A stretch of DNA of 64,000 bases from the NCBI GenBank assembly GCA_964187785.1, contig OZ076421.1, positions 26,660,001-26,724,000 of the forward strand, written 5' to 3'. Shown in pieces: positions 1 to 64,000 of this stretch. The notes under the pieces were generated by a model that saw only the letters and a program-made list of their open reading frames with translations, searched no databases and was not told the origin of the DNA. The stretch comes from Amphiscolops sp. MND2022 (taxonomy: Eukaryota). Numbering within the stretch: position 1 is the stretch's first letter; each line of letters opens with the position of its first letter. The position numbers and the translations under genes were made by a program.

Positions 1-2
1 GA

Positions 3-1891
3 TCTTTTTGGACCGAGAGTTTCTTTCATGAAATCCAGAAGAAATTGAGTTATGACAACGACGTAATGAGTTTATCGGTTATAACAGCTCTGGTTAATCG
101 TAATCACAATCTTGGAAATTCCTTTTCACTTGACGATTGCTATGAAAAATATATTCATTTCATGATAACAGAAAAGTTGAAGAAAGAGCAACCTCGGAAG
201 CAGGCTCCGATTTCGGCTGATGAAATTGCGAAATATTCCGTATCGCTGCAGGAAAGCGCAATTTCAAGATACGCAGAAAGCCGAAGTTATTCCGATAAAG
301 AGCTTCTATCGGAGCTATCATTGACGCTTCGGCTGTTTTTGATAAAACAGCACTTAAAAAGTCTGAAAAGACCGACAGAAAAGAAAAACGTTCTGGAATC
401 TTTAGAACTTTTGTGCCCTCGACTGAGCAGAGATGTCTCAAATATGCTAGAAGAAAAGAAACAAGCTCAATCTAAACTCGTTTTACTGTCTAATAAGCAA
501 TTGAAAGAATTTTTCCAAGCATCTCAAAGCCACAACTCAACAATCAGTCAAATTCTCATTAGTTTGAAGGAAATATTCTTCACCGTGGAAGAAATATCAT
601 CATGGCAGCAAAACGGAAGTAAAGTTGAAAGTTTTCAAATACGGATTGAAAACTTAGCACCCGCTAAACTTACGTCTATTCTTGAAAAATTTGCAGATAT
701 TGCGCAACTTTCACTGTCATTTCGAAATGTTAGCGGTCAATACATCCAAAATACATCAAACTCATCCATTCCAATTGAGTATTTAATTCCAAACTTTCCA
801 TACTTATCTTTGAGACAGTTAACACTCCATGACATTCCTTGCCAGCTAATCCTGGATAACTTCTCCAACATTCTAACCGGAAGTTCATCGAAGTTCAACC
901 TGAACAAAATTGTTTTCAAGCGACTAAACATTGATTTTGGTCACGTTTATCTTCTCAAAGAATTTGAACGAAATTTGGCCGAACTGGCCAAAAAAGTTTC
1001 GAATTTCGCTTTGGAAATTCAGAATTGTACCTTCAATGTAAACGGTATAAATAGAAATATTGGGCTTGTCGTTTTGGGAACCTTCGCATCAGATATTGAA
1101 ACAGACGACTTGATGAGTATTTCGCATGACGAGAAGTATTCATTCTATGCTGCGTTTAAGCATGATAGTTTAGACAATCTTATTTTGGAGTTCAATGATG
1201 GAATGTTGGACGAAATTTCAATCAGTGGCACAATCATTTCGCAATCGTGCTCAGATTCGGCTGAAATATGCAAACATCTGAAATTCAAGCCGTTTTCCAG
1301 CAAACTGGATTGTTCCAATATGAACATAATGTGCAAAAACGCTCGTTGTTTCAACTGCTCGTCTTTGTTACTTTTACAAGGTATTTGTCAAACTGGGGAT
1401 TCTTCGTTGAAAACGCATCACATGACAAGAATTATTGATTTCGGGCCCAAAAACTTCCTCCATGAAAATGTTACTTTCCTGACTGAGAACCTCTCGCCTT
1501 CTCTGTCAAAAACAAATTCAAATCGATTAACTGTCAAATTCGCTGGTCTTACCTTCGGATCCGACGCCACAAAAATCGAAACAAGCTCAGTAGAAACATT
1601 TGGGCTGAAAAATACGAAATCTCCCGACTCTGTTTCAAGTCTGACTAAACTGAAATCACAGAATGTGGTTTTTGAACTGGAGACAATCAAAGAAAGATTG
1701 GCTTCGGTTGAAAGTGACGATGAATCCATGATAGTTTGTCCAGATGAGAGCCACTGTGAGGTTTTGGACATTGAAGTTGACAACACTGGCTGGGGGTTTA
1801 CCAGGTTCAACTTGACCCAAGACCCTATAACTGTTTGCTTCAGCAATGGGGTCACTATCGAATGGCCTCCAAACTCAACGGTCGAATCGAG
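3..1891 (+). CDS. Large exon: putative STAND-NTPase helical/winged-helix region, degenerate LRR-like region, acidic linker and start of ZU5
   Basis: More than 620 stop-free codons. DVMSLSVITAL..LDDCYEKYIHFM resembles post-NACHT helical domains. LRQLTLHDIP, LNKIVFKRLNI and LDNLILEF are LxxLxL-like. GVTIEWPPNS matches the ZU5 N-terminal strand. An alternative phase-2 donor exists at 1967. Confidence 0.6.
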
Positions 1892-4800
1892 GTCAAGATT
1901 GCTCAAATTTCTACGTTTGCTGCAGAGTAAAATTAGGCAATTATGGTTCAATTTTGGTCTCCTTGGGTAAACTTTTGCTAGGACGTAAAGTCTCTAAAAA
2001 TGGACCTTACTTTATGAGCTGCTTTTTGGAGAAAAAACACTAGCCGTTGTGATAGTCAGGCACATTTTACTCGTACTGACGCTCCATTGGACTCATAGAT
2101 TGCTAAGGCTAACTCCAGTTTTAAAACATTATCAAGCCCTTACAAGTCTTTGGCAGAACTTGAGAAAATTAATGAATTTGCTAATTAATCGATACTTTTA
2201 CAAATGTTTATTCATATACAAGTTCAAATTGTGGGGATTTTGTGGAAATTAAAAGTGTAAATCTTTTCAGTTTGAAACGATTTCATCTTGTAATGCTTGA
2301 AGGCAACAGGTAAAACCTCAAACCCCAAATTTACCACGGATGAATCGCAAAAGCAAAACATGAAATCCGAAATAAATAATACTTTTTACAAATAGTTTTC
2401 TAAGCATTTTTCTGCTGTATAAGAATTTTTACAATCATCTCTTAGTTACGAAACGTTCCACCAGTCTTCTTTGAAAAATTTCACTGTCACTGGAGTCAAT
2501 GTTTTTGGGTTTGAAAGGCATTTTTTCTCACTAAAAGTATCAAAAAATCCAAAGCAAAAACCCTTTTGTGAAATGAATAATTTTCCAAAAAAATCGCACA
2601 GTGCCAAGGAACCCAAAGAAAACCCTTTGGTTTTAATTTTTTAAACTAGAGAATTCAAAAATGATTAAAATTAAAACTTTTCGAAAAAAAGTACATTTCC
2701 AAAAAAGACCCTCAGATTTGTTTTTAATCCAAGTGATATTGTCGAAAAATGTTTATAACTGTTACGAATTTTTTTATAGAATTTTGGCATGGTCACTTCA
2801 ATCGTATCGAAAAAAAAAACAACTAAAAGCTACTATAATAGTCGCGTTTCATTTCAGAAAGCGCCAACTAAAAACCAATTTATCTACTTTAATGATGATT
2901 TTATAAATTATTGGCAAAAACTTTCTGGACGTTTTTCAATTGAGCAACATTGACCTAGGCTTGTTTGTGTCGAAGTTCATGTCATGCCACCGGACATCAT
3001 TAAGAGAGTTTGCCAGTCAAAACACGAACCTCTTTGTATGTTGAGCCCTTTTTTATTCATCGATCAAATCGACGACAAACCATTTCTGCAGCCAGTCACA
3101 GTAACAATGCCATACTCGACTTCCAATCACAGCGCAGTCCCGAGCTCGAATCTTCATACTCGTGTCTTTTCATACCGAGATGGCAATGTGAAGCAATGGC
3201 AAACAGTCGTTGACCAATCAAAATACGAGTTGAAGGAGAATGTTTTCAAATACATCTCCAAGACGTTTTCACCCGTCGGGGCCGTTACTGATTCCCAAGG
3301 AAGTTCTTTGAACCCGACTGATTTCTGGGAAGTTTACCTTCCGGAATCGGTTTACGTTATAGTATGCCCATCTCAAAAAGACACGTACATTATTTTTGAT
3401 TGTCGCAAATTTCGAAACGAAGAGGAACACAAGAAACTGAAGACTACGCCAGGTGCAAGGTAAGTGATTATAGAAGGAAAACTTCATCCTGAAATTGAAC
3501 ATTTCTGACGAAATTCTTTCAGAAATTTCATTAATTCGTGATAAGTGGAACTACAGTTATTGGGGAACAGTTGATGTAATTGAGGGGAATTTTATGATTC
3601 GAAGAGCAATTTATTATGCAAATTCAAAAAATTATTAGGTTTTTGCGCTGATGAATGTTATCAGCAAAAGAAAAGGATAACTTTGAGAAAAAATAAGAGT
3701 AGAAAAATTTGCTGTCAAATGATACTGATTAGTTTGGTTAGACGTCAGAATTAAAAATGTTTTCTACTTGAGATCTAACTTTTCAAAAAGACCCTTTCTA
3801 TTCGTTCTTCGTTCTTATTCATTCCAAAAAAAATATGCAGCATAATCGAACTCAAATTCCAAAGAAATGTTTTGTTTTGAATTATAAAAAATTTTGTAGA
3901 AACTGGATGAAAATTATTTTTTCAAAAACCCTCAATTTTAATTGTAAATATCCGAAACAAGTTCCCATTTTGTGTGAAGGGACTGAGTTTTTCTAATCAT
4001 TTTGAAGGTTCCGGAAACTAAACGAAATGAAAGAAGGAGAACTGCTTTACGGGTCAATCGCTGGAAATCTCATCATCGACGAAGCCTGTGGCTATTCTTT
4101 GAGAGAAGACAAGAAACTGGTTTTCTATTACCCCGACCCCGAGCATGAGAGCAACAAACAGGAATACAAAATGAAAATTCTGTCACGAGCACGGGATCCC
4201 GAAGGCACTATCACTTACTACAAGGTAGGGGTTGAAGAAAAACATACAATATTAAACATTGCATTCCTAACATTCCCAAGTTGAACCTAACATTCCGACG
4301 ACGACGTCATTTTGAAATCTCATTTTGATAATTCTGGATTATTTCGATAAACCAAAATTATTGCTGTAATTATTCCATTAACGGCTCATTAAAACAGCGA
4401 CAAAAACTTGCATACCCAAAACTCGAATTTCAATGTTTTTGCAATCAGAGGAATTGGAATTTTTTGAATCAAATTTTAAAAATTACGCTTCCTGTTCTTT
4501 CGTACATAAAAGTGAAGTTTCTGAATCCGTCGACATTAATTACCCAATGAAGGCATTTAATTCATTTGGTTCAAACCCTGAACACATAGACATATTATTA
4601 GTGTATTCAATCCTCGTTTAAGGTACAATCGGTGGAGACTTCAAATTTTCACAAACTGTTCCATTTGAAACTGGAATTACAATTTACGCCCGTGAATTTT
4701 GAAAGACCCGGATACAAACGAAAAAATTCATCAGCAAGCCAATCTTCACCCAAAAAGATGGCTACTCAGTACAGCGGAAGTAACTTGGTTCTCACTTTCG

Positions 4801-6193
4801 ACGTCTTGAAGGAAGTCATCACAGTTTGTGGGAAGAAATGGCCTGAATTGTTGGAAAAGTTGAATATGGGCCGAGACAGAGTTGCGGAAATTATTGATCA
4901 TCATATTCAAGACGTGTTTCTGACTCTGAAAGGTAGACTAAGGATAAAGATGATGGAAACCATAGAAAAAAAAAACAAAATTAGATCTGATTCGGTTTCG
5001 TTAGGGTTAGAAAACCAAAGCGAATAGAACAGTATGTTCATCCGGATCCGAAATTATGTAACCTCGATTTGATTCCAAAGAACTCGTCGCAAGTACATAA
5101 AACCACCTCATCAAAAACCAAAATATAATGCTAATTTGGGGATCCTGTTGCATTAAGAACAAGATTATTGAACAAGATTATTAAGAACACTGTAAACTAT
5201 AAAAGTAAGACATTTCAAGCAATTATACAACTGAAAACTATATTATGCGTAAAATTTCATGCATCAATCAGGGAAAATTAATCCATAGCTAGCACTTTGC
5301 AATAACATTTATAAGCATTTTTCTTGTGCATTACTTACAGGCAATTAATAATGTAATGTTTTTGACAAGTTTTTATATCAGTTTTCTGCCCTTTAACTCG
5401 GACGAGTTGCATTCAGCGAGTTGTTTTCGACGAGTACGAGTTTTCCGCATACCAATTGCAGATAGAACCAATTGATCAACGTAAATATCAACATACGATA
5501 CCATGCATAGAAACTGTGTGAAACAATCATACGGAATCGTTTGGTTCCAAACTAAGAGTTGCATGAGATTTGATGATGTTTGGAACTGGAATCCATATTG
5601 TTATGTTTGGAAGCTAAAGAAACAAACTTTTATAAGATTCCCCAAGTATTACCTCGAGAAGGCTTACCCATTATCGTAAAAAAAATTAAAAAATTAAAAA
5701 CTCTCGATGAATTTGAGAAATTTTTTGACGGAGATGATTTAAAATGCTCCAAAAACTAAACCTATCATCTTTGCGATCTACAGACGAAATGGACCTCACA
5801 AAGAGCAAAGACTTCCTGAGAAAACTGTTTCTATTGTCCGAATTCTCTCCTCTTCAATTTGAGACAACTTTCAACAACTTCCAGAGGGACTACAAAGAAC
5901 AAGGCTTGGAGGCTTTTTATCAAATTTGTGTGAAATGGGTGGAAACTGCACCCGAACACTGCCGGACAATCGATACAATTGCAAAAAGTCTGGAAAGTTC
6001 TGGGTTACAATCCAAGGTCAAACATTTGGAGGTGATATCACCGGGCGCCAAATCCAGTGCATGTAAAGAAATGATTCGTATCATTGATAAAGAGGGAGAA
6101 AAAGAGTCAATAAAGGTCGTCGCAACTTTCTTGAATTCCCAAGACAGCGAGGCATGCAAAAAAATGGCGTTCACACTTCTTATGAAAATGTGA
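3..6193 (+). CDS. Multi-exon NLR-like/death-fold gene (helical + LRR-like region, ZU5-UPA, death domain(s)); 5' end lies outside the window. Proposed exons 3-1891, 2959-3459, 4008-4224, 4623-4932, 5784-6193
   Basis: The frame is open from base 3. Four GT-AG introns have matching phases: AG|gtcaag 1892 to cctag|G 2959 (phase 2), AG|gtaagt 3460 to ttgaag|G 4008 (phase 2), AAG|gtaggg 4225 to tttaag|GTA 4623 (phase 0), G|gtagac 4933 to ctacag|AC 5784 (phase 1). The joined protein gives contiguous ZU5, UPA and death-domain-like motifs. Confidence 0.8.
2560..2875 (+). repeat. Partial copy of HINE/DINE-1-like non-autonomous repeat in intron 1
   Basis: Contains the family body motif TCGCACAGTGCC and the terminal motif ATAGTCGCGTTTCA..AGCGCCAACTAA, whose reverse complement recurs near 48075 and 49505. 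Confidence 0.5.
2959..3459 (+). CDS. Exon encoding the ZU5 core and start of UPA
   Basis: LSPFLFI..PFLQPVTVTMPYS..W..KTFSPVG is a ZU5-type pattern. The donor at 3460 is a perfect GTAAGT. Confidence 0.85.
4008..4224 (+). CDS. Exon encoding UPA-like domain
   Basis: EMKEGELLYGSIAGNL resembles the ankyrin UPA segment EVLEGKPIYVDCYGNL. Both splice sites are frame-consistent. Confidence 0.75.
4623..4932 (+). CDS. Exon encoding end of UPA, linker and first death-fold-like helices
   Basis: VLKEVITVCGKKWPELLEKLNM..RVAEII matches the death-domain N-terminal pattern (L..V...G..W..L...L). The donor at 4933 is less certain. Confidence 0.65.
5784..6193 (+). CDS. Last exon: death domain and C-terminal tail
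   Basis: KEQGLEAFYQICVKW...RTIDTIAKSLESSGL matches the death-domain C-terminal pattern EQ.Y.ML..W....T...L..AL...G. Stop TGA at 6191-6193. Confidence 0.75.
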
Positions 6194-6689
6194 TGTTGAA
6201 AATTCGATGGAAAAATGTTCTGATATGCTGCCATATTCGAATCGAACATCGATGATAATTCTATGATTCTATGCATGAATACGAATATGATTTTTGCAAT
6301 TCAATATCATCTTGAAAGACGGAGTTTTTTCAACCATCACAGCTGAAACTATTGCGGCAAATCAGGATTGAGCAAAAAATGATTGACCGCAAATTCAAAC
6401 AGTTACTACTTTATATCTTGTGAACCAATTACAATCCCATAACGAATAATTGATGCTTAAAGTCCTCGAAATTTTCCAACCGAAGCATCGAACAGGGCTC
6501 AATAAAGATGATGTTAGATCAAGTGAGCCTAAACTAGTTTTCTAACTGGTGACCCTGACAAAAAACTGTTGACCCTCACATCGTCTTGCAGCTGTAGTTT
6601 CAAAGTGGTTTGATCAAGATCACAAAGGTCCGAATGATTGATCACCATTGCTTTTTGCTTTTCACCGCCAAATGCATTATTTTGTCATT

Positions 6690-6808
6690 GGCCAAACCAC
6701 CAAACTAGGGATGAAGGACTTGCTTAAGGCCCAACAACGGGGAGTTGAGAGAGATGCGAACCTGATACCGCCCCAGTACAAATCGAATGCTCTAACCACT
6801 ACACCACG
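6690..6808 (-). mobile_element. tRNA-derived SINE head with CORE-like segment
   Basis: The minus strand reads TCGTGGTGTAGTGGTTAGAGC (A box) and GGTTCGCATCT (B box), then GCCTTAAGCAAGTCCTTCATCCC, similar to the CORE/MIR motif CCTTGGGCAAGTCACTTAACC. There is no intact cloverleaf. Confidence 0.55.
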
Positions 6809-7049
6809 ATGAAAAGGACATGGTAACAATCATGGATCCCGTACATATTCGTACCAGAACCAAATTCTTTGAAATTCCTTCCACTGTTGGTCGATTCTAA
6901 TAGAAAGATCAGGTAAAATTTTCCTTCGTCACAGAATTTCGTTTCTCATCGCAGTTGCGCAACTTGTAACTCGAGAGCAGCCCAAGTGGGCGGGAAAAAC
7001 GTCTGGTGAGAAACGCCTAAAAGTCTTCTGGGATCCGAGAATAACATTA

Positions 7050-11844: not shown

Positions 11845-14800
11845 CTATTCGTCCAGTTTCCCTATTTCTTCTTCTTCTTTCTCCTCTCTTTTGGGAGTTT
11901 CGAATTTATTTTGAAAGACCTTACCGATGATGTCTTTAATGTGTATTTCCGTGTTAGCCTTATCGGCATCCTTAATAGCGGGGTCAAAATCTTCGTTTGT
12001 CAAGTTCTCCGCCACTGTCGTCAACGGTCCAATAGTTGCCAGCGACTGGCCTGCTTGCGGTGACTCACGACGTGAATTCGAACTCTGGCGATTTCGGATC
12101 AGCTTCGGGCGCCCTCTTCCCAATGTGCCAGTCTTTTTTGGAGTGGTCATACCTGGGGGCTCCGGTTCCAAGTCTTCAGATTCGCTGTCCGAGTCGTGAA
12201 TGTTGAATGTCCGGGGGGAGTTTATAAACGGGAATCCGGTCCATGTAGCACTGTTCCTCTGTTGTTGTGTAAGTTCAGAAATTGGTTTACTTATATGTTA
12301 TCTATGTTAAACCCTATTATCAGCTGTGGTAACGGTGTAGTTGGTGGCCGATACCACTATTTGGACTTTATCGGAGTATGCACTATCGCAATTTGGTTTC
12401 ACTATTTTTTTGCGTGGTGAAAAAAGAAGGGGCAATTTTTAACTCCTTTCGATCCTTTCTTCTGTTTCTTCGGCAGTTGGTCAGAGACACCGCCAGCTCC
12501 GTTGAATGAATACACCTGTAGGGTGTCCGGGTTTGCTGAATAACACGTTTTCGTTACTTTTTACAACGCGTCAAGAATTAATAAACTGCTGATCTCGATG
12601 TTTGGTTCGCGACCATAGTGTGGCTCGAATGCGGATTTATATATTCGTGTATGGGGTGTTTTCCGCATTACGTTTAATGCGGTGTCTAATGCTTTACCAA
12701 ATTTTTCGCAAGCATTTATGTTGGTTAGTACTTTTTCGTTTAGCGTTCTAACGCCCGTTCAACTAATCCTGTGGGTGTGTGTATATACCGTGTGCCGTAT
12801 GTCAACTTTGTTTTATAATTTTTGCAGAATTCTCTATATAACTGACCCGCGAATGCGGTCGCCTTATCTGTTCTAATCGTTTTTGGGACGCCGTTTTGGT
12901 TTATATATTGTTCCAAAAATTTGACCGCTGTCTGGCCTTCCGTTGTTTTACAGAAGCTGGCTGCCGGCCTATTACTAAACCGGTCCGGTCCATAAAGAGC
13001 AAAATGTAAAATCTATGGTTCTTCTCGGTGATTGGACCGATGAAATCCAATTGAATTTCTTCGTTTGGTTTACTTAGCGGTGGTAGCTGGTTTTTTGCCG
13101 TATTAGGTATATTAGGTTTGACGTTCTTACCTGACTTTTTGCAAGGGACGCAGTTATCACATTGTTTCTGTATGGCTTCGGTAATCCATGGCCACCAGAA
13201 GTGTCTTGCCGCCATTGACATTTGGTTTATGGCTGGGTGTCCCTTATGTAGGAGGCTGTTGACAGTTGTCCTCAAGTTCTCTAGGACTATTATATTGTCC
13301 TCGTAAAAACCAGTCCGCATCTGGTTGATAGCTTCTATTTATATAGAGAGTATTCGTCGGGCATATTGTCGAGCTGTTTTCTCTCTAAGCCAACAAAGCG
13401 TTTTGAGGAGACTTGGGTCATTTGTTGTCTCCATCATGACCTTTTTCAGGTCTGTGGCGAAATGCTTTTCCGTTTCCCTGACGTCATTTCCCAAATCCCA
13501 GTCGTTGGCTTCTTCTGCGTCCACTTTCGGCGCATGGCCCATTTTTATGGATTGGACGCTCTCGACGCCCACGTATTTGGCCCAGTCGACTGCCGGGACC
13601 TCCAGTACTGACAAGTCGTGGTCCGCTTTCGATCCAATTTCACCTTCTTCCATGGGGACCTGTTGTATTTGTCTTGAAGGCGGTCCTGGCTCGTCCTTTC
13701 GTTGTGGGTGTCGGCGTTGTGGGCGGTCCACTTCCCAAAAGAGGTCCACTGTCCACTGATCGTTGCGTTTTCCTCGTGGTTGGAAGCCCTGATGCTGATC
13801 CGCTTGTCTGTTATTTATATTTCTGATGGCCATTTGCAGTTGTCCTTCAATGATTCTCCTTTCACTTCGGAGGAATCTGAGCTCGTGGTATATTTTCCAC
13901 CGGCCACGGGATTATTGCCTGTAAACGCCGGGTTTGACTGTATCTCGCCAGTGGGCTATCAAGTTTCTGGTTTCTGCAGAAGGATCAGCGAGTTCTAAGT
14001 CAACGATGGTGCGTGCATCCATGTTTAAATTAACTTTTGTAAGTTGAAAATTCGTTCAGCTTTCCGTCGTTTGATTAAGGCAAGCAATGGCTGTTTGTTC
14101 ACGCCTATTGGATTGTTTCAGTTCGTTACGTTATATCCCGCTTTGTGATTGGCCTTAATGGTTGCTAAGGCAACCGTATTTGGTCATGAATTTATAGTGC
14201 GGTACGATGCTATTGATTACGTATTCTTTGTCGTATGCGTCATCTGCTTGCGGTGGTGCGGACGGACTTCTACTGAGATAATCCGCGTGTGCTAAATGCT
14301 TACCGGCTGTATGGCTTACGTTGATTGAAAAGTGGGCTAGCCGGTCCAGCCATCTCGTTAGCCTTGCGCTATACGTTTTGTGACTGATTGCGCTTAATTA
14401 GTGGTTCCTGCGCTTGGTGATCCGTGAGCGATTTTATCGGTTTCTCGTAAATATATAGACGGAAATGCTCCAGTCCCCAAACCACCGCTAATAATTCAAA
14501 TTCTTTGATGGCGTGTTTCTTTTCCGTATTCGAAAGGAAACGGCTGGGAAATCCGAGCAGTCTCAATTTTCCGTCTGGTTCTTCTTGCCAGAGCGTGGCC
14601 CCGAGGCCTTTTGTGTTCGCGTCCCTGGTTATTATATTTGGATAGTTCGAATTATAGTGTGCCAGACACGGTATTTTTTGTTTTAATTTTTTTGAACGCT
14701 TCCGTATGTTCTTCGGTCCATTTCCACTCCGTATATTTTTTGAGTAATTGTCTCAAAATGTCCGTTTGGGCTGAACGATTTTCGATATATTTAGACAAAT

Positions 14801-22576: not shown

Positions 22577-24483
22577 CTAATAACCAATCATATTTCCATC
22601 GTTTTTTATAGTTTTTACGAGGCGACTCTCATAAGATGCGTACATATTTCGGATAATTTCGGGACTGATATTGTTCCAAATATCAATCACTGTTTCTTCC
22701 AAATTTTCCCACGTTAGAGTTTGTCCTTGCAGGGATTTCTTCAGTATAGCCCAAATATTTTCCATGGGGTTCAAATCAGGACTATACGGAGGCCATTCGA
22801 GCACATCCCACTTCTTTTCACTTAGATAGTTGGAAACCTCTCTGCTTCTGTGAATTGGGGCATTATCGTGCTGGAAAACAATGTCCGGTAGGTGCAAATT
22901 TCTGTCATACTTTTCAAGAATTTCGACATAGCCGCTGCTGTTGAGTGTTGCCGGGCATCTAATTAGCATCTTCCTGCCATCCGATCGAATAGCTCCCCAG
23001 AACATAAGCGAGCGTTTATCAGTGTTCTGCCCTTGAATATTTTTTGAGTGGAAACGCGATCCTTTTTCTCGGAAAACTCTTACAATACCGTCACTGTTCA
23101 GACGCACACGAGTTTCATCAGTGAAAACCACATTTTCCCAGAATCCTTTTCCATCCAGCCAAGATTATTATGTAAAACTTCATGAGAAAAAGAATAGCAA
23201 AAGTAGAGTACTACAAAAATCTGCGATAATAAAAAACAAAAGAAAAAGTCAGAAAAAGTTGAAACACTTTGTCGATAAATTTGAGGCTTAAGCAGGTCAC
23301 CGACTTACGCTGTTCCCCGATTGTTTACGGTTCTTAGTCGGCGCTTATATCAAAAAGTGCCCGACTATTACAATGACATTTATTTTTTTAGTCGCCGCTT
23401 TTAACTGTTCGAATTCAAGTAGATTTGGCGCAGCCGGTTGAATTCTCACTTTTGACACCAAAGATTGTGGGTTCCACCCCAGGGCTGTCCCGTGTTTTTA
23501 GACGATTTCGCAAACAGAAGAAAAGGGTCACCCTGTGAATTTTTTTCGGCCCTGTGAAACAAAAAAAATGAAATATTCGAAAAATCGAAATTTTGAAAAA
23601 AATTCCAAAATTCATGCATGGATTTTGTTTCAGTTCAAGGCCGTAATTGGAAGGTTTCAAAAATAAAAGAATGCATTCTTATTGTGAAATGTTGTGAAAA
23701 AAATTGGGAAAATTTCGAAGATTTTTTTCGAAAATTTCGATTTTTTTTCTAAATTTTTGATTTTTTTGTCTCACAGTGCTGAAAAATTTCGAAGGGAGAC
23801 CCTTTGGTGTTGAGAAAAAATTGTCTCACAGTGCCGAAAAGTTTGTAGGAGGGGCCGTTTGGTGTTGCGATAAAAAAATTAGGAAAATTCCGAAACTTTG
23901 AGATTTTCTTCGAAAATTTCCGATTTTTTTGCTGAAAATTTTCGTCTATTTGCGGACTCTGTGTATGACTCTGTGTATGATTTTCCTTCCCAAAATTGAA
24001 AATTTTTTACTATGTACTTTTTTCAGTGAGTGCAAGGCTGGACAAAAAACCGAGCGGCTTCTTGGACATTCGCAAGCACCATTTTTTCCTCGTTGTTCGT
24101 TGTTTTTTATTGAGCTGAAATTTTTTAGCCGCCACTCTAGAAACTAGCCCATACTTCTTCAGAACTCGCCGAATTGTAGATCTTGAGACACTTTTTGAGG
24201 TTGCAAAAGAATTATACTTTACCCTGATTCTTTGTAATGTAGTTTTGGGATCGTTTTTGACGCTTCTTATAATTAATCTTTTGTCTTTTTTGCTAAGTTT
24301 TTCCGGTCTTCCTGGTGGTTTTTTTGGAGAATAAGAACTGGTTTTCAAAAAGCGCTTGTAAGCTGACTGTGCTGTTGATCGTGACTTCAAACCCAATTTC
24401 TCTTTGATTTGATTGTAAGATAACCCAATCTCGCGAAGAGTAACAATTTTGCAAACCAAAAATGAATCAAGCGGTTTAACCAT
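22577..24483 (-). CDS. Tc1-family DD34E transposase, split by a 905-nt insert (parts 24051-24483 and 22577-23145)
   Basis: N-terminal HTH with GRPEKL. C-terminal VFTDE...HDN-x-WPPYSPDLNPME with exactly 34 residues between the second D and E. Joining the two parts gives 333 aa without stops. Confidence 0.9.
23146..24050. mobile_element. Composite non-autonomous insert within the Tc1 ORF
   Basis: Imperfect terminal inverted repeats (TTTTTTGTCCAGCC vs TTTTCCATCCAGCC). Contains a HINE-family terminus near 23335-23380, a tRNA-like A/B-box pair (23426-23480) and GGGAGACCCTTT/CACAGTGCCGAAAA body motifs. Confidence 0.7.
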
Positions 24484-51739: not shown

Positions 51740-54700
51740 ATGCCAGAAAAAGATAAAAAACTCCTTTTGGACAGGAAAAAGTCTATATAAGTTATTTCAA
51801 GCCCTTGATGCTCTCGATGACAATGTCAATGGAAGTTGTCGATGAATAAAAGTACAGGCCTTGATTGACGAATGTGTCAACTTGCAACATATTGTTGCAG
51901 AGATAAATACAAATTGACAAAAAGTGATCCCAAAGGTGTCCTCGCAGAAGCAACTGCTAACGCGGAACAAGTGAATGATCGTTGTAAGCCATCGCTTGAA
52001 GAAGCACGTAACTATGTCTTTGCGCAGTCCCCAAAAAGTCAGAAATCAAAACAGTCTACTAAACGCTCCAAAACCTCTAGTAAGGCACACGCCCTAGTTG
52101 AATTGCAACTAGAACAAGAGGAGCTGGAAAGACAAGGCGCAGAAAAAGTTATTAGAAGCTGAAATGCACCTGAAAGCCTTACAAATTGAAGAAGTCACGC
52201 GTAAAAAGTTTCAATCTGCAAAAGATAAAGCTTGTTTAGCCAGCATTGACGACGATGAGTCAGATAACGATCCGGAAGAGTCAATGATTTCAGCAAAAGT
52301 GAAAGCTGCTACTAAAACCGCAAAATGAGTCAACGACATAGTAGCAAATCGTGAAAGTACGGAAGTCCGTTCCGAACCGATATTGTCTTTTGCAAAAAAG
52401 GCCGTTACCAGTGCTGGTATTTTTCCTCACAGTAATTCTTCACACTTTGTACCAACCCAGCAAACAACTCAATTGAACTTTACTAGGAATCCACCTTCGG
52501 GCCTTGTGAACAAGCCTATATTTTCGAATTGTGACCCACCCCAAAACGTGCAGTTTCACGTACCAAATTCTTCAACTACTAATGCTGCTCCTGCTCTCGT
52601 TCCCCCATCGAACCATGCACTTCCAACTGTACAAACTGGATTACCTGTGGTGAACTTACCATCTTTTTTCGATACTCGTTTGTTTCAGAAATCATTACCA
52701 AAACCTAATTTCAAATGTTTTTCGGGAGATCCATTGAAATGACCTGAAAGAAAGGGCATGTTCCAATCGACCTGTTGTCATTCATCTGTTTCAAATGATC
52801 ACAAGATGCGATACTGGAAACTTTTTCCAGCCGGAAAAGCCAAAGCGACAATAGAGGGTTTTGGTTTTGGTGGTAATTTTTCGAGCAAGCTTTCACTGCC
52901 CTGCAGCGACGCTTTGGGTCACCCCACTTAGTCGTAGATGCAAAAATAGACAAGATGAGGAAAATCCGCATGTCAAAATGCACAATTCGGAATCGATCAT
53001 TGAGTTTTCCCAGGCAGTGGATGCATTTGTATCTGTTCTCTCGTCCGAGCAGTATTTTAGTGACTTGCAGTCCTCTAGTAATTTGTCTCTTCTTGTGTCT
53101 AAACTCCCTATAAATCTTCGAGAACAGTGGTTCGCATTCACTGAGAACTCGAAGTCTGCAGTGAAATTAGTTAGTTTTCGTGATTGGCTACAGAAGAAAG
53201 CGATGATTCATGAACGCCTTCTCTTATCATCTACAAAGACAGAAAAATGTGATTAAAAACCTGAAAGGGTTCGAAGAGCAAACGTCTTGGCAACTAGTGT
53301 CTCCAACTCAACCGATAAAAACCGAAGTAATCAAAATTCATGTCCCCTTTGCCAAGGTAGTTATAAACTGTGGATGTGCGGTGCATTTCTCGGAAAATCT
53401 GTTAAGCAACGAAGTACGTTCGCGTGAGATAATAAACTCTGTTGTTCCTGCCTTCAAGCCGGTCATATGTCTGAGGATTGTAAGATGGATTTGAAGTGCA
53501 TGCAAAAAGTCCCACAATGTCCTTTTACACTTTGAAAACAGCGAGAAGTCTGGCAAAGCCACCGAAATAGCGACTGTGTCAGAAAATTCTATCGCTTCTT
53601 TACTGTTGCACAAGATTTCAGAGGAGCCTTGCAGGTATTAGAAGTTTGTTTGAGGAATGGTTCCTCCGAAGCAAAAGCTTGGACACTTTGTGATACCGGG
53701 AGTACCCATTCGTGGGTGTCTGAGAAGTTGCGTTCTTAAATGGGTTTGAAGGTTTCTCATGAAGTTGTTTTTGTTCGCTGTGTTACTGGGACCAATGAAG
53801 GTAGAACTCGTTGTGTAGATTCGGAGTTTTTTTCGTTAGAGGACAACAAATTTGTTCCGTTGAAATTTTCCGCTTTGGTAAGACCCGGTTTGTACTTGGG
53901 CAATGAAAAGCTAGATCTTCGGAATCTCACCCATGATTGCTCGCATCTGAAACATGTCGTTACTGACGTTATTGATTACTCCAAAATCTATGTGATTCTT
54001 GGTCAAGATGTGTTCTCAGCCATCTGTCCCATCGGTTTTAGTACTTCCGATAAACATTTTCCAGCGGCCGTCCAGTTACCCATCGGCTGTGTTGTTAGCG
54101 GACCGCTGCCTAATTGGAAACAACTGAAGGAAAAATGTTGCATGTTTTCTTCTACTGAAACCAATTCGGATAAAAGCGATGGATGTGCAGATTATTTGTC
54201 ATCACAAGTGTCAAAATGGTGGGCGCTTGAGTTCTACTTTTTGTTTGTCAATGTACCGCCGAGATCTAAAAGTGACAAACAGGCTTTGAAAAATTTGAAC
54301 GAGACATGTTACTTCAATGGTTCTCGTTATTCAGTTGGAATGCTGTGGTAAACTGAACACATCAAACTGCCGAATAATTTTGGGCAAGCCAAAGCTCACT
54401 TATTAAGTCTCGAAAGACAATTAGAAACTACTCCGGAAATCAAAGCTCTTTATTCTGAAACAAGAAAAGCAGACCTTGCCAAAGGTTATGTACGCAATCT
54501 GTCACTGGAGGAAGTAAAGTCCAATTGTGAATTCGCAACAGTGGTATCTTCCTCACCATCCCCTGCAAAATCCACATAAAGCTGATAAACTTAGGCGTGT
54601 TTGCAATGCTGCGTGTAGGTTCAGTGGAACTTCTTTGAATGATGTGTTGTTGCCCGGTCCAGATTTGTTGTGCGATCTCATTGGAATTTTGATACGTTTT

Positions 54701-57540
54701 CGTTTGTTCCGTATTGCAGTGTGTGAAGACATAGAAGCAATATTCATGCAGGTCGAAGTCCCTGTGCATGAGCAGAATTTTCTGAGAATTTTGTGGCGGG
54801 AGGGTATCTCTGATGAGATTGAAATTTTTCAATATACCCGACACATCTTCGGAGCGAAGTCTTCGCCAACTTGCGCTAACTTCGCTGTGCAAAAAGTCGC
54901 AAGCGTTAACAAAGATGATTTTCCTCAAGCCGCCGAACCGGTTTTCGACTCATTTTATGTCGATAATTTTTTGAAATCTTTCGCGTCAGCCGGTAAAGCC
55001 ATTGAAGTCATGACTTAGTTAATTGAGATGATGAAACGGGGTGGGTTCAACTTGACCAAAATCATCACGAATAGCGAATCAGTGTTTGAGTCAAAACACG
55101 AAGACATTGCTTTTGCAAATCCATCCATTTCTGACGTTGGAAGCGTTAGCGTTCTTGGGCTTAACTGGGATACGCGAGATGATACTTTTTCTGTGTCTCG
55201 TGGTGTTTCGAATGATCTTCCGGCCAAGTTAACCGAACAAAAAATTTTATCTTCAGTCTCTTCAGTTTACGATCCGTTAGGCATCGTAGCCCCATTCACC
55301 ATTCGCGGTTGTCTAATCCTAAAAGAATTGTGGTGTTGCGTAGGCCAGTCATGGGACACTGTCGTTCCGCAAAACATCAATGACTTGTTCCATGAATGGA
55401 ATGGCGAGAAAGATGTCATTCCAAACGTAAAGTTAGCTCGTTGTATTTTTACTCAGTCCAGTCATTCAAACATTGAACTTCACACTTTTGTTGATGCATC
55501 CCAAGCAGCCATGTCTGTTGTGGTTTATGTGCGACCCAAATGTAATGAAGAAGTGTTTGTGGAATTTGTAGTCGGAAAGTGCAGCATTGCACCAATCCGT
55601 TCTAGCACGATACCGAAGCTGGAGTTACAAGCAGCCTTGATTGGCATGCGGCTTTGTACAGCAGTCATTTCCTTCTTGCCGTTCGATGATGAACGTTGTT
55701 GGTTTTGGAGCGACAGTTCCACGGTCTTTCATTGGATTTATTCCTCTCACAAAAAACTCGCTGTTTTCGTAGCAAATCGGGTCGCAGAAATCCTCGATAA
55801 CACAACGGTTGATCAGTGGCGGTTTGTACCCGGAATTTGAATCCTGTCGACCTTGGCACAAGAGGATTAAAGTGTAATGAAATAAAGAGTACGGAGTGGC
55901 TCACTGGAGCCTCTTTACTGAAACTTGACCAGAACCAGTGGCCGAAAACAGATCTTCCAATTCAAGAAAATTCACTTCTGACGGCAACAGTTGCCGGTGA
56001 TTTTTTGTTGTCTTCAGTGTTTTCACACTTGTGGTGCAGGATTTCGAGTTTTGCAAAAATTTCTCGAATCCTAGCTTACGTCAAACGCTTCAGTGATCGA
56101 TTGTTGCCATCACGCAGTGGTAATCAGTGCGAAGCTCAAGAGAGTAGTCGTTCTCTTTCCGCTCCGGAGTTAGCATCGGCCGAACTCGTGATTTGGAAAC
56201 ATGTTCAGGCAGAGTCTTTCAGTAATGAAATCAAAGCGTTGAAAAAAGAGCAGCCCATTGCGAACTCAACCAGGATCGCTCCTCTGATGCCATTTTTGTC
56301 AAGCGTACTTTTGAGAGCCTAAGGCCGAGTTCGGAGGGCTTCATTCCTTCCTTTTGAGCAGAAGCATCCAATTATACTTTCTGCCACCCATCCAGCGGTG
56401 AAAGTTTTTTTGCGCAAAGTTCATGTCACTTATAATTTCCATGAAAGCATTGAGTACCTGCGGTCCGTAATACAACAAATGTTTTGGATCCTCGGGTTGA
56501 GGTGTGAGCTCAGACGGATTAAAGTGAAATGTGGACTGTGTAGTAAACGTCAGCCTGAGTCGCTTCAACCGCAAATGGCTGACCTTCCAGTTGAGCGTTG
56601 CTTTCCAATTGAAAATGCCATTCGCTTTCACTGGCATTGACTTCGTTGGTCTATTTGAGATAAGACTTTGCCGTTCGTCGCATAAAAGATGGTGTTGTTT
56701 GTTCACGTGCCTCACCACAAGAGCCGTGCACATTGAGGTTTGTCATGGTCTCACTACCAATTCTTATTTACTAGCTGTTCAAAGTTTCATTGCGCGCCGA
56801 GGTGTACCTTCATCTTTTGAATCAGATAATGGCACGAACTTTGTTGGGGCCGCTCGAGAGCTTCGAGAGTTTGCATCTTTGTTGAAAAGTGATACAAGTA
56901 TTCATTCATTTTTAGCTGAGCGTGCTTGTCATTGGAAGTTCAACCCACCAGCTTCTCCTCATTTTGGAGGAGCATGGGAGAGACTCGTCCGGTCTTGTAA
57001 GAAGGCAATGTTTGTCGTGTTGTCGAGCCGTCGTCTCACTGAAGAGACGCTTTCAACCACCATGTGTCTTGTCCAACAAATTTCCAATGCCAGACTGTTG
57101 ACAGCAATTAGTTCTGATACCCAAGACCTTGAAGCATTAACCCCTAATCATTTTTTACTTAATCGCTCGACTGTTTTTTTGCCTGTCGGTTTAAATCAAC
57201 CTTTGTATTTCTCATATTGCCGTGTTTCTAAACAAGCCCAATCGCACGTTGACTGGGTATGGAAACGTTGGCTTTCGGACTATGTCCCGCAACTTCAGCG
57301 CCGTAGTAAATGGGTTTTTGATTCGTCTTGTCACTTGATTGTTGGTTCACTTGTTTGGATCGTGGACACCGATAGTCATTGAGGCTCTTATCCATTGGCG
57401 CGTGTTGATAAATTGCACTTGGGCGATGATGGTCGTGTCCGGTCTGCAACTTTAAAAACGAAGTCAGTTTCATTGGTTCGTCCTTTGGTGAAGCTTGTTC
57501 CTTTACCAGACATTGGTTCTTATGACCAGGAACGGGGCCC
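51740..57540 (+). pseudogene. BEL/Pao gag-pol, multiply disrupted
   Basis: Gag LPKPNFKCFSGDPLK and Zn knuckles (CPLC; C..C...GH...C). Protease CDTGST. RT with YVDN instead of YVDD. RNase H HTFVDAS. Integrase TGIDFVG, SDNGTNF and FGGAWERLV. Many stops and frameshifts. Confidence 0.93.
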
Positions 57541-59718: not shown

Positions 59719-62700
59719 CCGCCTGCCTTGATTTCGCAGGGAAGAATTTAACAAGAGCGTTGAACACGCAAGCGCAATAAAAGAAGGCACACTGAAAGAA
59801 ATATAAGGTTAGGGAACAAAGTCATTTGAAATCATCATTGAAATTAGCATCAAACATTTTCTTCAATTTATGCACCAGTCGATTGTAGATTCCTGTAGCG
59901 GTTTTTATTTTTACGACTCTCACAAACTTGTCTGGGCCGGTGAAGACTGGATTTTAGCCAATGGCCACTGTAGTGGGGAAACATTGTCATCAATTACAAA
60001 AACAATATCACCAACTTTCAAATTAGAAGTTTCTAGTCTCCATTTATTTCTTTCTTGCAGGGAGAGTACATATTCTTTGACCCATCTTTTCCAAAAATGA
60101 GAGACCATTTTCTGTATTTGTGTCCATCTTTTTGTGGGTGAATGTGTACTGTCAGGATTTTTCAAATCATCGGTAGTTTGGCTCAAGGGTAGATTCTCCA
60201 AATTTCCACCCAAGCAGAAATGAGCAGGAGTTAAGAAAAACTCGTCATTTGGATCTTCTGATAATGGGCAGATTGGTCTTGAATTCAAAATCATTTCGAT
60301 TTGACAAAGTAGAGTACATAGTTCTTCAAAGGACAGAACTTTGTTTCCCATAACTTTTCGGAGATGTATCTTTGCACACTTGATTGCTGATTCCCATAGG
60401 CCACCAAAATGAGGAGCTCTTGGAGGGATGAAGAACCACTTGATGTGCAAGCCTGCTGCCTCAGCCTGCAAGGAGTCACAGTGTTCATTCCTTAATATCT
60501 TTTGCAGGTCTGCTATTTCTTTCTCCGAACCAACAAAATTTTTCCCATTGTCACTATAAAGATTTTTAAGACAACCTCTGCGAGAAACGAATCTTCAAAT
60601 GGCTGCAATACATGCTGCTGTACTAAGATCAGAGACTAGTTCCAGGTGAACTGCTTTACTTGCAAAGCACACAAAAAGAGCTAGGTAGAATTTCTCATGA
60701 GAATTCGGAGATTTCCTACAAAGGAAAGAACAAGCAAAGTCTAGGCCCACGTCCTCAAAGGCCTTTATAGGAGGGTCAACTCTTGTCTTTGGAAGATCTC
60801 CCATCAAGGGGAAAAATGGCTTCGAGTTGAAGCGATTACAATTGACACAATTCATTATCATTTTTCGAACCAAATTTCTACAATTGGGAATCCAGAAACG
60901 AGTTCTAATATGAGCAATTGTTTGACTAGTCTCACTATGGAGTGTCAGCTGGTGAGAATTCAATACATTCAGACGTGCGAGGTGACTATCTTGAGGAATT
61001 AGTCTTTGAAACTTGCTTTCTTCGGGCAACTTTGCATGTACTATTCTTCCTCCGACACAAAGAATGCCATGATCGAGAAACGGGTATAATTTGCAGGTTT
61101 GACTCTTGGGCTTAACTTGTTGTGCAATTTCTAGAGTTCGGATTTCTTCCGAATATCGTTTCTTTTGTTTTTGGCGAATCAAAATTATGATTGACTTGTT
61201 AACTCTGGGGCAGTAATGTAACATGGTAAAATAACCACGTTCTTCTTCAGTTTATCAATAAAACGTTTAGCGTAAGCAAGAATTCGGAGGACTTTGTATA
61301 AGGAGTTAAACCTCGACAAATCAATAACATCCTTTTGGGTATCCCTGTGAGCCACAGAGGTATGAAGACTGGTAATTCTTGTTGTTAGAGTCGACTTTTT
61401 CAACTCTTCAGACGTTTCAACAATTGACAATGATTCCGGAAATTCCCCTGTCATTAACCACTTCGGACCATTCCACCAAAGGTCATGTTGGTTTATTTCG
61501 TCATGGTTAATTCCCCGAGATGCAGGATCCGCGGGATTCTCTTCGGAACACACATGATTCCAATTCAATTTGTTTTCACCTTGAATTTCACTAATTCTGT
61601 TTGAAACAAAAGTTGACCAGCGAGATGGTTCTTTTGACAACCAACACAGAACTATTGTTGAATCAGTCCACGCGAAGGTTTTCTCAATAACAACTGGCGT
61701 TTGACCAATAGACTTGATGACATATTGATAAATCCTAGTGCCTAGCAAAGCAGCACATAATTCTAATCTCGGAACAGTTTGTGTTTTCACGGGGCTACCT
61801 CGGTTTTGGCAACAAGCAGGGATGACTTCCGCCTGCAATGAGAATCTGTGGCAACAATATAAATACAAGCGGCATAAGCCCTTTCTGATGCATCACAGTA
61901 GAGATGCAACTCAATCTTGTCCGAGAATCCATCAAGTAATACGAATCGGTGCAATTCCACATCCTTTAAAGAGATCAATTTCGTTCTCCACTTCAAAAAT
62001 TGGTCGGCAAGTTCGGAAGGGAGGTGATCATCCATGAAATTTTTGCTTCCCAAGCCCTTTGCATTAACTGTTTCAAGAAAATGGTAACTGGTGACAACCA
62101 ACGCAATGGGTCAAAAGTCTTTGAAACGTCACTGAGCATTTGTCTTCTGGTCAGAACCTTTGCTTTAAAGTTTTCCTTTTCGATGTGGGAAACCTCAAAA
62201 ACGAAGCGATCTTCGCTGTGTTGCCAAACAATACCGAGCGTTTTTATTGTATGGTCTTTGTCTAAAAACTCCAAGTTATCATTTGCTTCGCGATACTCCG
62301 GCGGAAGGTCTAAGATAATGCTGGATTCGTTCGAAGTCCACTTGCGGAGATCAAATCTTCCTCGTTTAAGAGTTTTTACTGATTGCTTTTGGAGTATTCG
62401 AGCTTCATCGATCGAATTGGCTCCAGTGAGAATGTCATCAACATAAAAATCTCTCAATATAGCTCTTCGAACCTCAGTGGATACTTCCGACAAATTGGCA
62501 CATTCTCGCAAAGATAGGATTGAATGATACAATGAGGAAGCTACGCCATACATAACTCGGGTCATGCGTTAGGTTTCAACCGGACCATCAGCTGTAAATC
62601 TCCAGAGGATCCGATGAAAGTCTCGATCGGCTTTATCCAGCTCAACTTGCCGATACTGCTTCGCTACATCAGCTGATAAAGCAACCTTGAAGAAACGGAA

Positions 62701-64000
62701 TCGTACGAGAATATTGAACAAATCATCTCGAAGTTTGGGACCAACTAGCAAGTAATCATTAAGTGAAAAACCAGTTGTCGTTTTAGCACTAGCGTCAAAT
62801 ACAACACGCAACTTGGTGGTTGTACTAATTTCTTTCAGCACGCAATGATGAGGCAAGTAGAAGTTTGGAGAATTAGTAATCTCCCCGGGTTGGACCTTCT
62901 CCAAGTGTCCAAGGTCAATGAATTCTTGAATGAAAGCTGAATACTTTCGAGAAAGGTCGACATTATGGCGCAAAGTGTATTCGAGACGAATGAAACGCTT
63001 CATTGCGTTCGCTTTCGAAAGACCTAAATTGTGGGGTCCATCTTTAAATGGCATCTGTACTACGAAACGGCCGTCTTCATTGCGTTTTGTAGTGCTATCG
63101 AAGTGCTCTTCAAAACGACGCTCATCCAAAGTTAAGAGTCTAGTTTCAGGGACACTTTCTACTTCCCAAAATTTCAAAAGGAGTTGGTCAGAGTCACAAT
63201 TCGGAGTGGTAGTCATGTGGGACACAACGTTGTTACTGCCAGACGAATACACAGGACCAGACACTACCCAACCGAATACGGAATCCCGAATGCACAAGCC
63301 GTTGTCCTTTATTTTATTATCAAGCATAATGTCTTCTATAACATCTGCACCTAGCGAGAGGTCAACCTTATTAGGCACGTTGAAAGTGGGATCAGCCAAG
63401 TCAAGATTGTTCACATGGCGCAAGGTCGAAACGTCAATTTCTTTATCAGGAATGGTATTGGAGATTTTTGGTATGAGATGAAGATTAACTTCGATAGTAT
63501 CATTCAACTTCGCAGGCAATAAGCCTCGAGTTTTTTGGAAATGGGAAGAACCAATTGTAGAAACATTTATTTGGCTGCACTGAGTTGGCAGCATGAGCGC
63601 CTTTGCAACATCTTCTGTTACGAAACTGGCTTGTGAACCGGAACCTAAGAGAGCCAGCAGCTTGATCGCGTCTCCCGATGAATTCCGAATTGTTACAAGA
63701 GATGTAGAAAGAAGAACAGTATTTATTTCATTGTCAGCACTAAAGTGCCCTGTGGTGAATTGCTTTGTAGACTCCATTTTGTTGGAAGTTGAATTCATAC
63801 TTGACTAAGTCTTTGTAGAGGTGCGTTGATCAAGGAGCTGTTTCTGAGGTCGATGAAGCAAGGTGTGATGTTTCATTTTGCACTCACGACAAGTGAACTT
63901 AGATGGGCACGCATTAGACGAGTGTCCTGATTGGAAGCAGTTGAAACAGAGCTTTTGGTCTTTTATGAACTTATGTCTATCAGGAAGACACATTCTTTTG
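59719..64000 (-). mobile_element. Second, unrelated BEL/Pao element (internal region, truncated by the window edge), decayed
   Basis: Minus strand: gag CFNC..SGH...C..C..C...HHTLLH, protease ALLGSGSQ (catalytic D to G), RT FYVDD, RNase H LYCDAS, integrase VGLDF, YSDNGKNF and FGGLWES. PPT-like AAGGCAGGCGG at 59719-59729. Confidence 0.93.

Follow-up and report, generated by a model that had tools for sequence, protein, structure and literature searches.

A multi-exon acoel gene predicted to join NACHT-like and leucine-rich-repeat-like regions to a ZU5-UPA fold and a death-domain-like bundle

The window analysed here is a stretch of 64,000 nucleotides from the acoel Amphiscolops sp. MND2022 (GenBank assembly GCA_964187785.1, contig OZ076421.1, positions 26,660,001 to 26,724,000 of the forward strand), and positions are counted from its first letter. 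Positions 3 to 6193 of the plus strand are the larger part of one multi-exon acoel gene, whose protein is predicted to combine a NACHT-like and leucine-rich-repeat (LRR)-like half with a ZU5-UPA module and C-terminal helical bundles. In this AT-rich eukaryotic DNA (GC 0.34-0.46) a 655-codon open frame is followed by four shorter open reading frames (ORFs) in other frames. Five plus-strand segments with canonical GT..AG borders and matching phases, when spliced by script, give a single open frame that runs to the TGA at 6191-6193. The same locus is present in another public assembly with 99.8% DNA identity, where its called ORF (P0001) adds 224 residues upstream of the window; with this upstream part the protein is at least 1,332 residues long. 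The final exons and the other features of the gene are given below, where pLDDT is the predicted local distance difference test score of a structure model, dN and dS are nonsynonymous and synonymous divergence, and L003 carries the orthologous ORF of a related assembly.

3 to 1891, plus strand: exon 1, the part within the window; open frame that runs 224 codons further upstream, with the donor placed by colinearity with homologues
48 to 470, plus strand: predicted helical region following the NTPase, resembling the helical and winged-helix domains (HD/WHD) of that position; helices 212-378 of the P0001 model, at low confidence, and VIA alignment to NLRP3
468 to 1700, plus strand: predicted LRR-like alpha/beta solenoid of the RNase-inhibitor/NLR type, about 10 beta-alpha units; model pLDDT 85-94
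1758 to 1891, plus strand: first four strands of the predicted ZU5, at the end of exon 1; aligned to residues 15-60 of the orthologue model, pLDDT about 90
1892 to 2958, plus strand: intron 1; GT..AG, phase 2 on both sides, containing the stop at 1968-1970 and bearing 15-nucleotide terminal inverted repeats
2959 to 3459, plus strand: exon 2; remainder of the predicted ZU5 (to 3292) and start of UPA (from 3314); dN/dS 0.06 against L003
3266 to 3274, plus strand: Phe-Ser-Pro, candidate autoproteolysis site at the ZU5/UPA boundary, in the context KTFSPVG (3260-3280), with the putative cut between F and S
4008 to 4224, plus strand: exon 3; middle of the predicted UPA; 92% amino-acid identity and dN/dS 0.01 against L003
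4623 to 4932, plus strand: exon 4; end of the predicted UPA (to 4676), Ser/Lys-rich linker (4680-4796) and helices 1-4 of the death-domain-like bundle (from 4797)
5784 to 6193, plus strand: exon 5; end of the death-domain-like bundle (to about 5890), second helical bundle of uncertain fold (5903-6187) and TGA at 6191-6193
6501 to 6506, plus strand: AATAAA, a possible polyadenylation signal read in the sequence, 308 nucleotides past the stop

An exhaustive HMMER search found 14 relatives of exon 1. P0002, which falls in the cluster of Symsagittifera roscoffensis XP_063719515.1, shares 41% identity across the whole spliced protein; the annotation of the S. roscoffensis orthologue says no more than 'uncharacterized protein LOC134846193'. 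In its own contig P0002 is one uninterrupted ORF of 3,906 nucleotides, and P0019, from another assembly, is also one ORF (3,993 nucleotides). P0020 (69% identity), in which the last intron is the only one, reads through the equivalents of exons 1-4 as a single ORF. Junctions 1-3 are colinear, without indels, with the ORF in L003, and junction 4 is colinear with P0002 and P0019. Against L003, dN is 0.25, 0.09, 0.05, 0.11 and 0.19 for exons 1 to 5 and dS is saturated, which marks each of the five exons as constrained coding sequence; the best-kept part of the protein, by a wide margin, is ZU5-UPA, with 84-92% identity. Moreover, because intron 1 splits the ZU5 domain, exon 1 cannot be a complete separate product. 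A sequence-only reading of this DNA had joined five frame-consistent exons into one gene, and the spliced frame, the colinearity of the junctions with intronless relatives and the purifying selection all bear this out.

Exon 1 has two possible donors in the same phase, GAG/GTCAAG at 1891/1892 and TGG/GTAAAC at 1966/1967, at the end of the ORF. In the alignment, all of at least 12 homologues join ...ST.E.R directly to.VC.EVH..P, and since none has a 25-residue insert at this point, the donor is placed at 1891 and the stop at 1968-1970 is intronic. The donor at 1966/1967, which would add 25 residues inside ZU5 that are present in no homologue, was rejected. Exon 1 is therefore joined to the downstream exons as had been proposed, and its end is set at 1891, upstream of the 1968-1970 stop. 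An extra exon within intron 4 (about 5614-5675, an ORF resembling a death-domain helix) was likewise discarded, since its phases are incompatible with the last exon and the 4932/5784 junction is colinear with intronless ORFs. No splice joints were found in four sequencing runs (Logan contigs), the contigs of which include the introns; the four runs thus behave as DNA.

At the 5' side, both P0001 and L001 carry the frame upstream of the window start. Coding conservation begins exactly at a TTTCAG acceptor that is common to L001 (9950-10001) and L003 (5715-5764), 26 nucleotides before the called ORF start, and the start codon should therefore lie in an earlier short exon further upstream. Rfam and tandem-repeat scans of window positions 1-7000 gave nothing relevant.

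The domains of the protein were sought with Pfam, run on the five ORF pieces, ten homologues and sub-regions, with NCBIfam on the N-terminus, and in the PDB by phmmer (single exons) and by profiles (alignments A1, A4, A5, A6 and A7). The only consistent sub-threshold PDB matches are ABC-type P-loops and the death domains (DDs) of FADD and RIPK1. Pfam gave no match to LRR, ZU5, UPA, FIIND or Death.

The structural model of the C-terminal half, made on the S. roscoffensis orthologue, argues strongly for a ZU5 followed by a UPA fold. It matches the ZU5-ZU5-UPA-DD structure of ankyrin-B (4D8O; Foldseek E 1.5e-11, VIA Z 16.7), the AnkB/beta4-spectrin complex (6M3Q; E 1.1e-10, Z 17.2), ZU5A-ZU5B of erythrocyte ankyrin (3UD2; E 5.0e-4, Z 15.4, with a root-mean-square deviation of 3.0 A over 150 residues), the cytoplasmic domain of UNC5b (3G5B; E 1.6e-8, Z 8.1) and the FIIND of rat NLRP1 (7CRW; E 1.7e-6, Z 7.2). 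The nearest Atlas clusters of this model belong to ZU5, UPA and Death families, including PIDD-like LRR+ZU5+Death and MACC1/SH3BP4. The ZU5-UPA module named in the sequence-only reading is thus supported by Foldseek values of 1.5e-11 to 1.7e-6 and by Z scores of 15-17 against ankyrins. The predicted ZU5 is single, and only about 80 low-confidence residues separate it from the LRR.

At the C-terminal end of ZU5, between its last strand and the following strand of the model, lies Thr-Phe-Ser-Pro (3263-3274), which we count as an instance of the [S/H]-Phe-Ser motif. Conservation of its Ser and Pro is 90% or more, and 10 of 12 family members that share just 25-30% identity keep the Phe; the paralogues show HFS and SFS variants. 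In CARD8 and NLRP1, Phe and the following Ser are essential for autoproteolysis and the first position tolerates change (PMC3210808).

Upstream of ZU5, the LRR region, modelled with a pLDDT of about 88, gives VIA Z values of 10-12 against the LRRs of NLRP3, NLRP2, RNase inhibitor, RanGAP and FBXL17, and Atlas LRR families at a TM score of about 0.5 by target; the C-terminal LRR solenoid of NLRs is thus predicted here, at fold level only. The best Foldseek matches of the N-terminal model, spanning about 900 columns, are without exception NLRs (NLRC4 at 1.3e-5, followed by NOD2, NLRP9, NLRP3 and NLRP1), and they outscore LRR-only proteins. The VIA alignments begin at the NACHT of NLRP3 and NLRP9, with residues 80..787 of the model facing 135..1036 of NLRP3. 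Post-NACHT helical domains and degenerate LRRs had been suspected upstream of ZU5, and structure prediction, which returned both the LRR and the ZU5-UPA folds, agrees with this at the level of the fold.

The NTPase module (residues about 80-240 of P0001) lies almost wholly upstream of the window, and about 80 residues without a recognisable domain stand ahead of its P-loop. A Walker A-like GKRGCGMST is found at residues 89-97, where HMMER puts the GKNGCGKST P-loop of ABC ATPases in register, a Walker B-like IIIFDNVE at 155-162, and the NACHT-typical GFS at 209-211; the order Walker A, Walker B, sensor 1, GFS and helical domains is present, in a part of the model with low pLDDT. The sensor-1 position reads TILCSFQS, from which the arginine is absent. 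In four orthologues the Walker A lysine is replaced by Met, Met, Met or Ile (GKRGCGMST, GERGCGMST, GKRGCGIST), so that an intact GxxxxGK[ST] is not found; because it is replaced in all four, the loss of the lysine is old and has been retained. Pfam NACHT (PF05729) gives E 0.07 and 13.4 bits, under its cut-off of 26.7, and nSTAND_NTPase5 gives E 0.026; the PDB profile search of the module matches at the P-loop only. In the language-model comparison, residues 62-345 lie closest to NACHT, NPHP3_N and nSTAND families, which score 0.93 and have 159-174 features in common with them. As judged from motifs, neighbours and predicted fold, this is a NACHT-like STAND NTPase module that lacks the Walker A lysine and the sensor-1 arginine. 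The NTPase core expected upstream of the window is thus there as far as Walker A- and B-like sites in the same ORF and NACHT/STAND neighbours are concerned; the P-loop lysine and a Pfam-level NACHT match are not.

Past UPA and a Ser/Lys-rich linker, the C-terminal model shows six helices at residues 364-444 (pLDDT 56-88), and six more at low confidence. The VIA alignment with ankyrin-B extends to model residue 482 (chain residue 1523), beyond the end of UPA in the model (318). About 80 of the 100 nearest Atlas clusters of the helical tail are Death, DED or CARD families, with scores of 0.72-0.84 that are only a lead. Together with the profile matches to the DDs of FADD and RIPK1, this makes one DD-like six-helix bundle probable, and the fold of the second bundle is uncertain: of the death domains in the earlier proposal, one finds this support and the other gives no DD signal.

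The family has further members. LRR-like and ZU5-UPA parts are shared by four paralogues, P0010 and P0004 in the assembly of the window and P0005 and P0007 in a related assembly; the NACHT-like part was not found in their ORFs nor within 1-6 kb upstream. P0010 (L007 1001-5698) and P0004 (L008 6001-7578) have differing N-termini, and the match between P0010 and the query falls into two parts (residues 167-699 and 839-1406). These two genes point to a small family expansion in this genome, for which a search had been suggested as a check. No paralogue was found in the remainder of the window, and word-indexed homologue searches with the C-terminal half and the helical tail returned only orthologues and the ORFs of this locus itself.

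Taken together, the domain order of the protein is very probably a short N-terminus, NACHT-like module, helical region, LRR-like solenoid, ZU5, Phe-Ser-Pro, UPA, linker, DD-like bundle and a further helical bundle. We consider an autoproteolytic sensor of the NLRP1/PIDD type, with a nucleotide-dead NACHT, to be the best explanation, with a probability of about 0.6. Self-cleavage at Phe-Ser-Pro, an analogy with NLRP1/CARD8 and PIDD1, is marginally favoured; the protein would cut itself between Phe and Ser, and the fragment with the NACHT-like, LRR and ZU5 parts would remain non-covalently bound to the UPA-death-fold fragment and silence it. If the N-terminal fragment were lost or displaced, the UPA-death-fold piece would be freed, could oligomerise, and might recruit death-fold partners, leading to a cell-death or defence response. 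One possible route of release is 'functional degradation' after attack by a pathogen enzyme, for which there is a precedent (PMC7483925); this release-by-degradation step, also an analogy, is tentative and has a somewhat less than even chance. As none of the orthologues has the P-loop lysine, the switch is unlikely to be an oligomerisation of the NACHT driven by nucleotide, and the N-terminal half is more likely a bait or an autoinhibitory scaffold. In mouse NLRP1B, a Walker A mutation results in constitutive activity and not in loss of it (PMC7483925). For the NACHT-LRR-ZU5-UPA-DD arrangement as a whole, we infer a possible 'sensor' role and 'signalling', as the sequence-only reading did, by analogy with these systems.

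Several points weigh against this explanation. There is no significant Pfam, NCBIfam or PDB sequence or profile match for any domain, and because no sequence library recognises any part of the protein, the domain evidence consists of structures, motifs and language-model features. In the AlphaFold model, pLDDT is below 50 over long stretches of the N-terminal 330 residues, where the matches to NLR folds are soft. The orthologue on which the C-terminal model was made shares 71-83% identity with the protein of the window in ZU5-UPA and 35-45% in the helical tail. The DDs of FADD (E 0.71) and RIPK1 (E 0.97), although among the top three PDB matches of the profile and in register over helices 1-4, are sub-threshold; for the second bundle, pLDDT is below 60 and the PDB profile search gives no DD match. 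Comparison of the upstream DNA of L001 and L003, as DNA and in translation, revealed no 5' exon with a start codon within 10 kb. Many ZU5-UPA proteins, such as ankyrins and UNC5, do not self-cleave.

Among known systems, NLRP1 (PYD-NACHT-LRR-FIIND-CARD) has the same order of NACHT-type module, RNase-inhibitor-type LRR, one ZU5, [x]-Phe-Ser, UPA and death fold; in addition, the C-terminal model of the acoel protein matches rat NLRP1 FIIND and its N-terminal model matches the NACHT-LRR parts of NLRs. The acoel protein differs by having no recognisable PYD, a C-terminal bundle that appears to be of DD type and not a CARD, an extra helical bundle, and the loss of the Walker A lysine and sensor-1 arginine. 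Orthology with NLRP1 is not claimed, because there is no detectable sequence similarity to solved NLRP1 chains and the acoel lineage is far from vertebrates. CARD8 likewise has ZU5-UPA with a Phe-Ser site followed by a death-fold domain, but it is without the NACHT-like and LRR half and bears a CARD in place of the DD-like bundle.

A second explanation, which we regard as unlikely, is a platform of the PIDD type, in which self-cleavage would yield active fragments and the DD would assemble a PIDDosome-type complex with an adaptor and a caspase; degradation of the N-terminus would be unneeded and the NACHT-like module would be a lineage-specific add-on. In fact, the conserved core of the family (LRR-like, ZU5-UPA and DD) is the layout of PIDD1, the paralogues share LRR-like and ZU5-UPA parts with no NACHT-like part in ORF or flanks, LRR+ZU5+Death clusters of PIDD-like proteins are among the Atlas structural neighbours, and the first helical bundle looks to be of DD type (FADD and RIPK1 matches) rather than CARD. 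PIDD1 (LRR-ZU5-ZU5-UPA-DD) also has an HFS-type motif, and one paralogue reads HFS. However, PIDD1 carries a pair of ZU5 domains and two cleavage sites, a short LRR of SDS22 type and no NTPase module, whereas here the ZU5 is single and the LRR is of the RNase-inhibitor/NLR type, preceded by an NLR-like NTPase-helical module in four orthologues. The paralogues, moreover, are prokaryote-style ORF calls and may miss upstream exons.

Less probable again, and in our view quite unlikely, is a ZU5-UPA-DD supramodule similar to those of ankyrin and UNC5, which would be a closed, autoinhibited scaffold for binding partners and would neither be cleaved nor act in immunity. ZU5-UPA indeed finds its best structural matches in ZU5B-UPA of ankyrin-B/G and erythrocyte ankyrin, and its conservation of 84-92% is expected of a binding module. 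MACC1/SH3BP4, which carry two C-terminal death-fold domains, gave the best Atlas TM, 0.37 over residues 28-543. On the other hand, Phe-Ser-Pro falls precisely on the C-terminal end of ZU5, and paralogues of 25-30% identity retain it. Self-cleavage is not known in the ankyrin, UNC5 and MACC1/SH3BP4 proteins, UNC5b included, which have no Phe-Ser site and other N-terminal halves; ANK repeats, transmembrane parts and Ig/TSP parts are absent from the acoel protein, whose N-terminal half is NLR-like. In UNC5b, the Phe position is occupied by Leu (PMC3210808).

It is most improbable that exon 1 forms a gene of its own with its end at the 1968-1970 stop, where the public ORF call P0001 does terminate, or that the locus is a pseudogene broken by three insertions (introns 1-3, absent from relatives, the first with transposon-like terminal inverted repeats) whose downstream ORFs are relics, because the three insertions have GT..AG ends and excise in frame without an indel relative to the intronless relatives, exons 2-5 are stop-free with dN of 0.05-0.19 and saturated dS, and ZU5 would be halved.

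The introns have features of their own. Introns 1-3 (1892-2958, 3460-4007 and 4225-4622) look like gains in this lineage, since the orthologous ORFs of three related assemblies (in L002, L003 and L004) lack them. The inverted repeats of intron 1 lie at 1892-1906 and 2940-2954 and are complementary at 13 of 15 positions; its flanks are CGAG/CTAG, and it resembles a terminal-inverted-repeat element in which the AG acceptor comes from the target duplication. Direct repeats, AAGGT and AAGGTA, flank introns 2 and 3, and no second copy of introns 1-3 was found among the DNA examined. Positions 5203-5524 of intron 4 are a very high-copy short repeat in all four DNA runs, the summed contig depth climbing from a level of about 90 first to 230-800 (5203-5363) and then to about 10,000-36,000 (5364-5524); a 14-nucleotide unit, GACGAGTTGCATTC, is present there in 2.5 copies at 5401-5435, with no Rfam match. 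A smaller spike of depth, about 10-fold, is seen at 2788-2948 in intron 1.

In two of the four DNA runs there are an 8-nucleotide insertion after 4581 (intron 3) and a 1-nucleotide deletion at 4966 (intron 4). The other differences are single bases, five of them intronic, one in exon 3 (4080) and one in exon 5 (6130); all this is ordinary polymorphism, mostly intronic. The remaining window, read by eye, consists mostly of transposon-derived ORFs (12901-13833, 22577-24483, 52861-57382 and 59920-63798), among them a Tc1/mariner-like transposase in two pieces on the minus strand, and ORFs like integrase, RNase H and reverse transcriptase of long-terminal-repeat-type retroelements on both strands.

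Acoels reportedly lack the Toll/MyD88 and complement pathways. Combinations of NACHT with ZU5, of unknown function, are known from sponges, cnidarians and ctenophores (PMC12909245, PMC8260672), and they resemble the acoel protein in having NACHT and ZU5 within invertebrate NLR repertoires; those proteins were found by Pfam domains, whereas the acoel family escapes all Pfam models. FIIND-CARD NLRs have been described in vertebrates only (PMC11508797). The NLRs of acoels have been counted by domain search (PMC12849515), and because no Pfam model detects any part of the family described here, at least one family goes unnoticed in such domain-based surveys of acoel immunity (PMC12849515).

It is conceivable, though rather doubtful, that acoels carry an independently assembled or very ancient 'tripwire' of the NLRP1 type, in which a nucleotide-dead NACHT-LRR decoy sits on a self-cleaved UPA-death-domain effector. 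If this were true, sensing by functional degradation would not be an innovation of vertebrates, and the family would be invisible to every domain-based survey of immune genes. The complete NLRP1-like order, at the level of predicted folds, is found in at least four acoel assemblies, under purifying selection and with a P-loop that has been dead since before the species split. The family may therefore offer a natural test of whether a FIIND sensor can work without nucleotide binding by its NACHT, and of whether the logic of release by degradation has evolved more than once.

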